A stretch of DNA of 64,000 nucleotides, from the NCBI GenBank assembly GCA_039096225.1, contig JBBPEB010000003.1:496001-560000 (forward strand), in the 5' to 3' direction. Below are positions 2,611-49,903 of the stretch, piece after piece; position 1 is the stretch's first letter; every line of letters begins with the position of its first letter. The notes below the pieces were generated by a model. It did not search any database. It worked only from the letters and a program-made list of their open reading frames with translations, and was not told the DNA's origin. The stretch comes from Blastocystis sp. Blastoise (Eukaryota; Protista; Bigyra: Opalinata). The translations under genes were made by a program, and so were the position numbers.

Positions 2611-3931
2611 ATGACAAACAAAAACACAAATATATCGAGTATTCTTGGATGGACATTGGGAATTAGTTTAGGATTATTTGCAATAAAGAAATATAGAGAT
2701 TATAAAAAGTTGCAGAACAAGATTCAAAATGTTTATGGCATACCTATTATTGTTGTTTACTCTGGCGAAGAGGCTGAGGATGCATTGAGAAAGTACAAAG
2801 TTAACGAAGAAAGATATATTGGCCTTGACTTAGAATGGTCGAAGAGATACCCTATTTCTTTGTGTCAAATATGTACAAGCAGTATATGTATAATTATTGC
2901 TAATGTTATGAATATTCCAAACATACCTGAGACATTAAAGACTATTTTATTGGATTCAAAAATTATCAAAGGAGGTGTAGGAATTGATGGTGATTGTCGA
3001 CATATTTATTCATTTTGGGGTATATCTGTGGAAAGTGTTGTTGATTTAAGGTAGTTTATATATTGTATCATTTTCTATTTTTGTTTTTCTTGTATACTTT
3101 AAATAAATTTATGGTTATATACTCTATATAGAGTATTAGCTTCAAATTCGGGTCATTCCAATCCAAAATGTTCGTTAAAATATCTATCTCAATTATATAT
3201 ACCTGTAAATATTGATAAAGATGAGAAGATTCAACGAGGAAACTGGGAAACTACTCCACTTTCAGAAGAACAAATCATGTATATATATATATATATAATG
3301 TTTAGTAATTATTTTTTTATTGATTTTTATTATTATTATAGGTATGCTGCAGAAGATGCTTATTGTTCTTTACAACTGTTACATGCTCTCTATCGATTGT
3401 AAGATATATAAGAAGAATAATAGTTATTATACTAGTTTTTATTCTATATATGTAATTGATTTTATGAATCTATATGTATGTATATATATAGTTCAAAATC
3501 AAAAATACCTGAATATGAATATCTATCTCAATTTAAAAATAAATTTATTTTCAAATCAACCAATAATTCAAATAAATCACCTTCAAATTCATCATCAGAT
3601 CCCTCAGTGCGTCAGTTGAAACGAAATCCTTTTACTTCTCGTCGTGAACCACTTTATGAAAATTGCCAAGTTCATATCCTTATATATATATATATATATT
3701 ATAATAATTATAATTATTATTTAAATATATTTCTTAATATATATACTTGCACCTGATGGTGAAATGTTATTTCTCGCTCCTCGAAAAAAGGTATTCTGGT
3801 ACCTTAATCGTAATCTAGCTAGTATATATAATAATAATATAGAAGAATATTTCTAATCATTATATATATATATATAGAGAAGATAAATGATGATCCATTA
3901 ACTATTCAATTGAAATTTGAACCTCATGGTA

Positions 3932-3990
<59 letters not shown>

Positions 3991-4065
3991 AAGAGGTCAT
4001 GCAGGCCAAACATTTTATTTAACGTCACACGATAATCGATGTGTTGTTTGTGGCAAAGAAGAGAC

Positions 4066-4149
<84 letters not shown>

Positions 4150-4712
4150 TTCATATTTATTTATTTATTTCATTTATTTATAAATAAATGAAAAACATAC
4201 GTATTTTATTTTATTAATTTAAAATATTAATAATCTATTTATAGATATGTGCGTCATTCTATTGTTCCTCACCGTTATCGTACGTTCCTTCCCGTTACAT
4301 TCAAATCACATGCTTCTCATGATATTGTTCTTCTATGTGTATATATATATATTATTTTTATATACATCTTCTTTTCTAATTGTACATATATATATATATA
4401 GTTAGATTGTAATATGAAATGTTGTACTAGTGATGATATTTTTAGTAAACAAATTGAAAAAGAAATGGGTGTAGAAGATATCAAAGTATATATATAATGA
4501 TTATGATTATTATGATTATATATATATGTTATTATTATTATTATTATTATATATATATATAGCCCAAAACATATGTTGACCATGAATTATATCAAGTTAT
4601 ACGTGCAGCTAATGCCTTATTAAAATCAAATAAAAAGAAATGCTCTATTCCTCAAGAAAGAAAGGACCATCTTACTGATATTGTGAAACACTATTTACTT
4701 GATGTACTTAAA

Positions 4713-4776
<64 letters not shown>

Positions 4777-5580
4777 CTTTATATATATAGTGAACTCTGA
4801 TGAAGTTACTTTATCTGATGAACAATTATTATTTGGTATATAAACATATATATATATAATGTTATATATATATAGTAACTAAGTTAGAAGTATCTATAAA
4901 ATTAGATCGTGATGAGAGTAAAGAAAAGAAAGTTATTGATATACTTATGAATACATCTGATCCTTTCGAATCATTATCTGAATTTGTATTTAAATGGAGA
5001 CGTCATTTTGTAGATATATCCTTATATATATATATTAGTAGTATATATTATTAAAAAAACTATATATATATATGTTCTTAATATATATACATTATGCATC
5101 CTCAGTATTTATCTTCTAATTGGAGTATATATACACCTCTTCGTTCTCTTGATTTCGATATGTCCCGTGGGGAATATAGTTGTGAAACAAAACGTAGAGA
5201 ATTAGAAGAAGAACAAAAAGAATCGTTTGTTAAAATGACTCCCGAAGAGATTAAACGCCAATTAAGAGCTATAGGAAAAGAAGACAATAGTGATACTAAT
5301 AATAACATTAATAATAATAATAAGATAAATAATAATAAGATTAATAATAATAATGAATTCAATGAGGAATCTAGTAATGAGTCTGTTTTATCTGGTATAT
5401 AATATGATAAAATAAATTATATATTTATACATATATATTAACTAATTATTAACTAATTATTATATAGATATAGGAAGTGATGTTGAGAATGAAATTATGA
5501 AAGATATGAATAGAATGAATAATAATGAATTCTATGATTCTGAAGATTATGATGAAGATAAAGAGATCAGTAATGAATAA
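2611..5580 (+). CDS. EXD2: EXD2-like 3'-5' exonuclease (N-terminal TM anchor, DEDDy domain, C-terminal HNH-like region), about 14 exons
   Basis: IGLDLEW (Exo I), [27 protein letters not shown] (Exo III), [34 protein letters not shown] and [14 protein letters not shown]. Two of the joins need AT-AC introns. Confidence 0.9.
3674..3746 (+). other. U12-type (minor spliceosome) AT-AC intron, 73 nt
   Basis: 5' ATATCCTT, branch-like TTCTTAAT close to the 3' AC. Removal gives [13 protein letters not shown] in frame. Confidence 0.9.
5016..5090 (+). other. U12-type AT-AC intron, 75 nt
   Basis: 5' ATATCCTT, TTCTTAAT branch-like site, 3' AC. Removal gives [14 protein letters not shown] in frame. Confidence 0.9.

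Positions 5581-34532: not shown

Positions 34533-49903
<15,371 letters not shown>

Follow-up and report, generated by a model that had tools for sequence, protein, structure and literature searches.

The window considered here, a stretch of 64,000 nucleotides (nt) at positions 496,001 to 560,000 of contig JBBPEB010000003.1 from Blastocystis sp. Blastoise, carries on its forward strand an EXD2-like gene (2611-5580) of 14 exons and, by summing exon lengths, 649 codons. The exon model was derived from reading frames and compared with the deposited protein, and every protein search was run exon by exon. Exons 1 to 7 lie at 2611-3050, 3132-3278, 3342-3398, 3492-3673, 3747-3821, 3878-3928 and 3990-4065, and exons 8 to 14 at 4245-4338, 4402-4485, 4563-4703, 4790-4835, 4876-5015, 5091-5394 and 5468-5580, all on the forward strand. 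Ten of the intervening introns are of the GT-AG class, two (introns 4 and 12) are of the AT-AC class and one (intron 10) fits none of the canonical classes. We consider it very likely, on the sequence evidence set out below, that introns 4 and 12 are genuine U12-type introns of an EXD2 orthologue, that is, introns of the minor spliceosome. The source genome, from a tortoise-gut isolate, comprises 33.34 Mb in 34 contigs at a guanine-plus-cytosine content (GC) of ~21%, with the window at ~16-27%; for the Russian-tortoise isolate, Table 1 of Lind et al. 2025 (PMC12129017) gives 33 scaffolds, 33.3 Mb and 23.1% GC.

The identity of the gene was established from both of its ends. The DEDDy 3'-5' exonuclease family PF01612 matched on exons 1-2, the exonuclease domains of human EXD2 (6k17) and WRN were also hit, the C-terminal exons aligned with named EXD2 proteins, and a profile of the C-terminal domain gave the public protein 154.6 bits. 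By domain content the gene is thus an orthologue of EXD2, which acts in DNA repair, with the N-terminal exonuclease domain and the EXD2-specific C-terminal domain both present. The orthologue set was assembled by searching exon 1 against 1.84 billion representatives, which returned the gene's own annotated protein (P0001, the 584-amino-acid public model KAK8814210.1) together with EXD2-like proteins. Specifically, the relatives from Anneissia, Periplaneta, Bactrocera, Penaeus, Uranotaenia, Armadillidium and Planoprotostelium are named by their sources as "exonuclease 3'-5' domain-containing protein 2", and further relatives are transcriptome proteins from Arcella, Amoeba, Gefionella and Physarum. 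Like the EXD2 proteins of animals, amoebozoans and green algae, the Blastocystis protein combines a PF01612 N-terminus with a CVVCG...H...H domain and a WRxHF...MxPxFL tail, homologous along their full extent to named EXD2 proteins; unlike them, it carries an Asn-rich low-complexity insert near its C-terminus, and its identity to them is ~30%.

The first-pass annotation, made from the letters of the DNA, had placed two AT-AC introns with shared starts and ends at 3674-3746 and 5016-5090, and both were recovered exactly there. Intron 4 (3674-3746, forward strand) is 73 nt long, in phase 1 and at 5% GC, such that its retention would shift the reading frame, while intron 12 (5016-5090, forward strand) is 75 nt long, in phase 0 and at 11% GC, and its retention would introduce two in-frame stops; in composition, both resemble the gene's other introns. 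Each opens at its first base with the 5' splice-site motif ATATCCTT (3674-3681 and 5016-5023), which would pair with the U11 5' end, AUAAAGGG, and each bears the branch-site motif TTCTTAAT (3731-3738 and 5075-5082), whose presumed branch A, at 3737 and 5081, precedes the final base of the intron by 9 nt. In both introns ATATATAC directly follows TTCTTAAT, and a polypyrimidine tract is absent. The two share the start ATATCCTTATATATATATAT, which is ATATCCTT(AT)6, and the end TTCTTAATATATATAC, their first 20 and last 16 bases being identical, and the exact 3' 16-mer occurs within the window solely at these two introns. Hence, both display the features by which U12-type introns are recognized, namely [A/G]TATCCTT at the first base, a U12-complementary branch motif within about 8-20 nt of the 3' splice site, and AT-AC termini, GT-AG being the other accepted pair. 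Since ATATCCTT by itself is about as frequent as expected by chance in so AT-rich a window (10 observed versus 9.7 expected), the 5' motif alone proves nothing; the signal that rises above chance is the combination of the 5' motif, a branch-like motif 8 nt ahead of the terminal AC, and an exact restoration of frame and peptide.

That restoration was examined by mapping orthologues onto the window and by mapping each exon peptide separately onto the orthologues. Exon 4 (3492-3673) ends in ...PLYENCQV and the opening base of a Leu codon, with PLYxNC conserved in orthologues, and exon 5 (3747-3821) resumes with the split Leu followed by APDGEML..., where APDG...KKxxWYL is conserved. Between the orthologue residues that match the final complete codon of exon 4 and the initial one of exon 5 lies exactly one residue, corresponding to the split Leu (C|TT), and this spacing holds in eight orthologues (P0143, P0071, P0098, P0007, P0025, P0030, P0142 and P0004 of our set). 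At junction 12, exon 12 (4876-5015) ends in ...FKWRRHFVD, with WRxHF conserved, and exon 13 (5091-5394) begins IMHPQYL..., with MxPxFLxxxWS conserved. WRRHFVD and IMHPQYL map to consecutive residues in at least two orthologues, the Arcella (P0139) and Anneissia (P0143) proteins, and an uninterrupted WRxHFxxxMxPxFL motif with that spacing is seen in Anneissia, Volvox, Penaeus, Periplaneta and Planoprotostelium. The earlier claim that removal of each intron restores a conserved EXD2 peptide is thereby borne out.

The chief practical result, and the new element here, is that the deposited gene model KAK8814210.1 is mis-modelled. In place of all three non-GT-AG introns, it uses GT-AG introns at 3670-3790, 4603-4790 and 4986-5105, and in doing so loses 16 + 34 + 15 = 65 conserved residues, of which the 34 belong to exon 10. 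The extra pieces that it cuts have a GC of 30-41%, within the range of the exons (24-41%) and unlike the gene's other introns (5-17%); the start of exon 5, for example, is called intron by the public model at 41% GC. Because the extra sequence is exon-like in GC and conserved at all three non-GT-AG introns, we conclude that the public model is wrong, and the pattern of three replaced introns is the signature of a predictor that admits GT-AG boundaries only. The first-pass annotation had expected such gene finders to truncate the gene. Mis-modelling did occur, but not truncation, as the in-frame GT-AG introns cause internal deletions instead. The third of these sites, intron 10 (about 4704-4789, forward strand), is a different matter from introns 4 and 12, in that the conserved exon 10 is incompatible with any GT-AG, GC-AG or AT-AC solution. 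An enumeration of its possible boundaries gave zero canonical and many non-canonical solutions, with GT..TA (equivalent to TA..AG, 86 nt), AT..AG and GT..AC as candidates.

Beyond the gene itself, the genome encodes the RNA components needed to remove such introns. The first-pass annotation had suggested looking for genes of U11, U12, U4atac and U6atac, the small nuclear RNAs (snRNAs) of the minor spliceosome, and all four were found, U4atac as a low-scoring candidate validated by its pairing. U6atac (G000:C21:544821-544937 of the genome, minus strand; 63.8 bits) and U11 (62.9 bits) matched their Rfam models over the full length and above the cut-offs. U12 also matched over its full length, with the branch-site box GUAAGGA unchanged and AUGAGUAAGGAAA intact. 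U4atac gave nothing at the default threshold in the genome search, and a relaxed threshold yielded a full-length candidate at G000:C8:151033-151167 (L006:1501-1635, minus strand). Specifically, nucleotides 2-13 of this candidate (UCGUCCUUAUCG) are perfectly complementary, over 12 nt, to nucleotides 37-48 of U6atac, forming stem II; its AUGCUGAC pairs with GUUAGCAU of U6atac to form stem I (8 bp); and an AUGA...UGA kink-turn loop and an Sm site are present. We accepted the candidate because of this complementarity to the genome's own U6atac. Further, the stem II strands of both RNAs depart from the Rfam consensus and yet pair perfectly, and are therefore read as covarying. Such covariation indicates that the minor snRNA genes are under selection, and by the same pairing the U6atac gene looks functional. 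As a practical corollary, a search at gathering thresholds would overlook the U4atac candidate of this genome. A transfer RNA gene (L006:2078-2149) lies ~440 nt from the candidate. Among the proteins, a SNRNP25-type Ubiquitin_4 domain was found on a 235-amino-acid open reading frame (43.4 bits), and the C-terminus of PDCD7 matched one exon at 25.3 bits, slightly under the cut-off.

The branch motif of introns 4 and 12 proved to be characteristic of the genome as a whole. We scanned the assembly for the pattern ATATCCTT...TYYTTAAY...AC, with the reversed pattern as a control and gaps of 30-60 and 61-90 nt scanned separately, and obtained 163 matches versus 25 in the control for the shorter gaps and 128 versus 30 for the longer ones (in total ~290 versus 55), such that the combined U12 signature is enriched genome-wide, by our figure five- to six-fold. 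Within the set with gaps of 30-60 nt, the motif was exactly TTCTTAAT in 59 of the 163 matches, making it the commonest variant, while branch motifs ending in C numbered 10 of the 163 (6 in the control). The AT-shifted, T-ending branch consensus that had been proposed from these two introns is thus real and general across the genome. Many of the matches are near-identical copies in multi-copy genes or repeats (e.g., C13:1011307, C17:779114, C20:1054483 and C23:350157), and one 91-nt stretch beginning ATATCCTTCATTTATGG recurs at no fewer than 14 loci; because so many matches are near-identical copies, the raw counts overestimate how many independent minor introns there are.

These signals suggest that recognition would proceed along the established U12 pathway. 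The U11 5' end would pair with UCCUU within the 5' splice site ATATCCTT, and introns beginning ATATCCTTTA, which are common genome-wide, would pair further with U11 than would the ATATCCTTAT of introns 4 and 12. On the U12 box GUAAGGA, TTCTTAAT could form U·A, U·G, C·G, U·A, U·A and A·U pairs, then a bulged A, and finally U·G, such that the classic TCCTTAAC duplex would be retained with two of its C·G pairs converted into U·G wobbles. The second A of TTCTTAAT would be the bulged nucleotide and hence the branch point, with the AC of the 3' site 9 nt downstream. In this scheme, AT mutation pressure would shift the wobble-tolerant branch positions to T, and U12 would undergo no compensating change; a T-rich branch norm is to be expected because AT pressure acts where wobble pairing is tolerated.

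Several observations weigh against assigning introns 4 and 12 to the minor spliceosome. The public annotation pipeline used hints from RNA sequencing (PMC12129017), and this RNA-informed annotation chose GT-AG alternatives over both AT-AC introns, and exon 13, used in a word search over the 55-177 amino-acid range, returned no transcript-derived or other proteins. The U12 gene, at 46.8 bits (E 6e-7), falls under the Rfam gathering score of 53, and the U4atac candidate, at 29.7 bits (E 0.045), falls well under its own gathering threshold. The best match to zf-U11-48K was rejected as the 48K subunit, since it is TRM13; besides that match the genome has a second CHHC exon. Finally, the U6atac box that pairs with the CCUU of the 5' splice site reads AGCCGAGAGA against an Rfam consensus of AAAGGAGAGA, with three positions changed; this divergence would weaken the canonical pairing with CCUU, and the introns nonetheless keep ATATCCTT. 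One might argue from the first of these points that the public model is right and that the mRNA uses its GT-AG introns at 3670-3790 and 4986-5105, given that KAK8814210.1 has precisely those junctions, that RNA evidence informed its pipeline, and that ATATCCTT, at its chance frequency in the window, could be incidental. We regard this as highly improbable, as the 16 and 15 residues that would be removed are the best-conserved motifs beside the junctions, as the excised pieces have the GC of exons and not that of the gene's other introns, and as the same model, at the remaining non-GT-AG intron, also drops 34 residues that are conserved, in the manner of a GT-AG-only predictor.

It might instead be proposed that the introns, though real, are spliced out by the major spliceosome, or by the process, whatever it is, that deals with the other odd-ended introns of this genome. 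Non-canonical introns are numerous in the assembly, intron 10 of the same gene is one for which no canonical solution exists, and the divergent 5'-splice-site box of U6atac would fit such a view. However, introns 4 and 12 each bear every element of the U12 signature (ATATCCTT, a branch motif that is complementary to U12 and lies 9 nt from the 3' end, and AC), a combination that is enriched across the genome, whereas the U12 signals are absent from intron 10; in addition, all four minor snRNA genes are present, and the covariation of U4atac with U6atac speaks for selection upon them. Removal by other means thus strikes us as very unlikely. The reading of both stretches as U12-type AT-AC introns therefore stands, as the first-pass annotation had it, on the splice signals, the restored junctions and the snRNA genes, all of which were observed directly, and from these we infer that the minor spliceosome actually removes them.

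A separate question concerns how the two introns came to be so alike. The first-pass annotation had held their near-identical ends to be compatible with lineage-specific gain or with homogenisation, and one could go further and suppose that they are recent copies of each other or of a mobile introner. In favor of this are the identity of their ends over 20 bases on the 5' side and 16 bases on the 3' side, and the orthologue loci compared, which have no intron at the position of intron 12 (five taxa) or of intron 4 (three taxa). Yet contigs C8 and C19 carry the exact 3' 16-mer as well, in U12 introns unrelated to these (at least three), and further introns on contigs C13, C18, C28 and C32 open with ATATCCTT(AT)n. 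Among the ten GT-AG introns of the EXD2 gene, moreover, four begin with GT(AT)4 and six have a TA run immediately before the AG. In their interiors, introns 4 and 12 are similar at 0.49, which is the same value as that between intron 4 and the GT-AG intron 6, a pure (TA)n; the gene's other introns are the valid control for this comparison, and a significance test based on mononucleotide shuffling was rejected, since shuffling destroys the TA repeats. No shared interior beyond splice signals and low complexity, by which an introner or homogenised family would be known, was found between introns 4 and 12. Thus, the likeness of the ends amounts to consensus plus (TA)n microsatellite, of the low-complexity kind that fills most of the genome's introns, and gives no sign of homogenisation, copying or shared origin. 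An origin by copying or homogenisation is, in our judgment, already largely refuted and barely credible.

The comparison of intron positions drew on the genomic loci and mapped exons of six orthologues. The site of intron 12 is uninterrupted in Anneissia, Penaeus, Periplaneta, Volvox and Planoprotostelium, and that of intron 4 in Anneissia, Periplaneta and Tegillarca; Penaeus was excluded from the latter comparison, as the junction-4 motifs were not found in its locus. Intron positions are not shared between the Blastocystis gene and the EXD2 genes of animals, amoebozoans and green algae, with the partial exception of Volvox carteri, in whose EXD2-like gene (L009:3926-4259) a GT-AG phase-0 intron falls between ...ENCRLL and APDG, 2 nt downstream of the position of intron 4. 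This near-coincident intron could reflect either coincidence at a favored site or the relic of an old intron. An orthologue was sought in other Blastocystis and stramenopiles, through the exon 1 representative search, a word search that used the public model KAK8814210.1 as query and the naming of 30 cluster representatives, and none was found. The intron positions would fit a gain within the Blastocystis lineage, and do not separate gain there from loss elsewhere. To our knowledge, fresh gains of minor introns are, Physarum apart, extremely rare. A fuller scenario, in which both introns were gained within Blastocystis, the spliceosome has drifted toward T-ending wobble branch motifs, and U6atac lacks canonical 5' pairing such that the choice of 5' site falls mainly to U11, is offered tentatively, and we doubt that all of its parts will hold together.

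Minor introns and a minor spliceosome are already known for Blastocystis, and two in one gene is what would be expected for the genus. In Blastocystis ST1, Gentekaki et al. 2017 reported a total of 346 U12-type introns spread over 319 genes, and in both ST1 and ST7 they found the complete sets of four minor snRNAs and seven minor-specific proteins (PMC5608401). The statement in the first-pass annotation that such introns are rare and usually single per gene is therefore wrong for this genus. Larue & Roy 2023 counted 253 U12-type introns in ST1, of which 77% were AT-AC and 49% in phase 0, and described rapid turnover between subtypes (PMC10639083). The introns described here agree with those of ST1 and ST7 in being of the same class, AT-AC and short, in not avoiding phase 0 (intron 12), in exceeding one per gene in some genes and in being accompanied by minor snRNAs. 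They differ in several respects: the tortoise genome has a GC of ~21% versus 39-55% in isolates from humans, its (TA)n-filled minor introns measure 55-130 nt versus ~40 nt, and its branch motif nearly always ends in T (TTCTTAAT, TCTTTAAT or TCCTTAAT). The paper describing the tortoise genomes (PMC12129017) makes no mention of minor introns. Relative to the canonical U12 introns of metazoans and plants (ATATCCTT ... TCCTTAAC ... AC), the 5' motif is identical, the U12 box GUAAGGA is the same, the distance from branch to 3' site is short, a polypyrimidine tract is lacking and the ends are AT-AC, whereas the branch site has undergone two C-to-T changes (G·U wobbles) and the 5'-site box of U6atac is three positions off the Rfam consensus.

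The window also contains a third AT-AC intron of the U12 type, 127 nt long and in phase 2, on the minus strand at 37804-37930. It reads ATATCCTTTAT...TCTTTAATATAATTTAC and lies in a TRRAP/FAT-domain-like gene, where its removal joins ...CWKLNLW(D) in frame to YVRTLLYLPE.

Set against this background, the importance of the two EXD2 introns is modest, and their value lies mainly in annotation. The same mis-modelling probably affects roughly 200-300 genes with minor introns in the tortoise assemblies, and would bias comparisons of orthology and gene content that build on them. For the biology of the genus, the minor spliceosome is now documented in the deeply divergent, AT-rich tortoise clade, where AT pressure would seem to alter the branch motif solely at those positions that are able to wobble-pair with an unchanged U12. 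The divergent box of U6atac would be the more interesting point, if confirmed in relatives.

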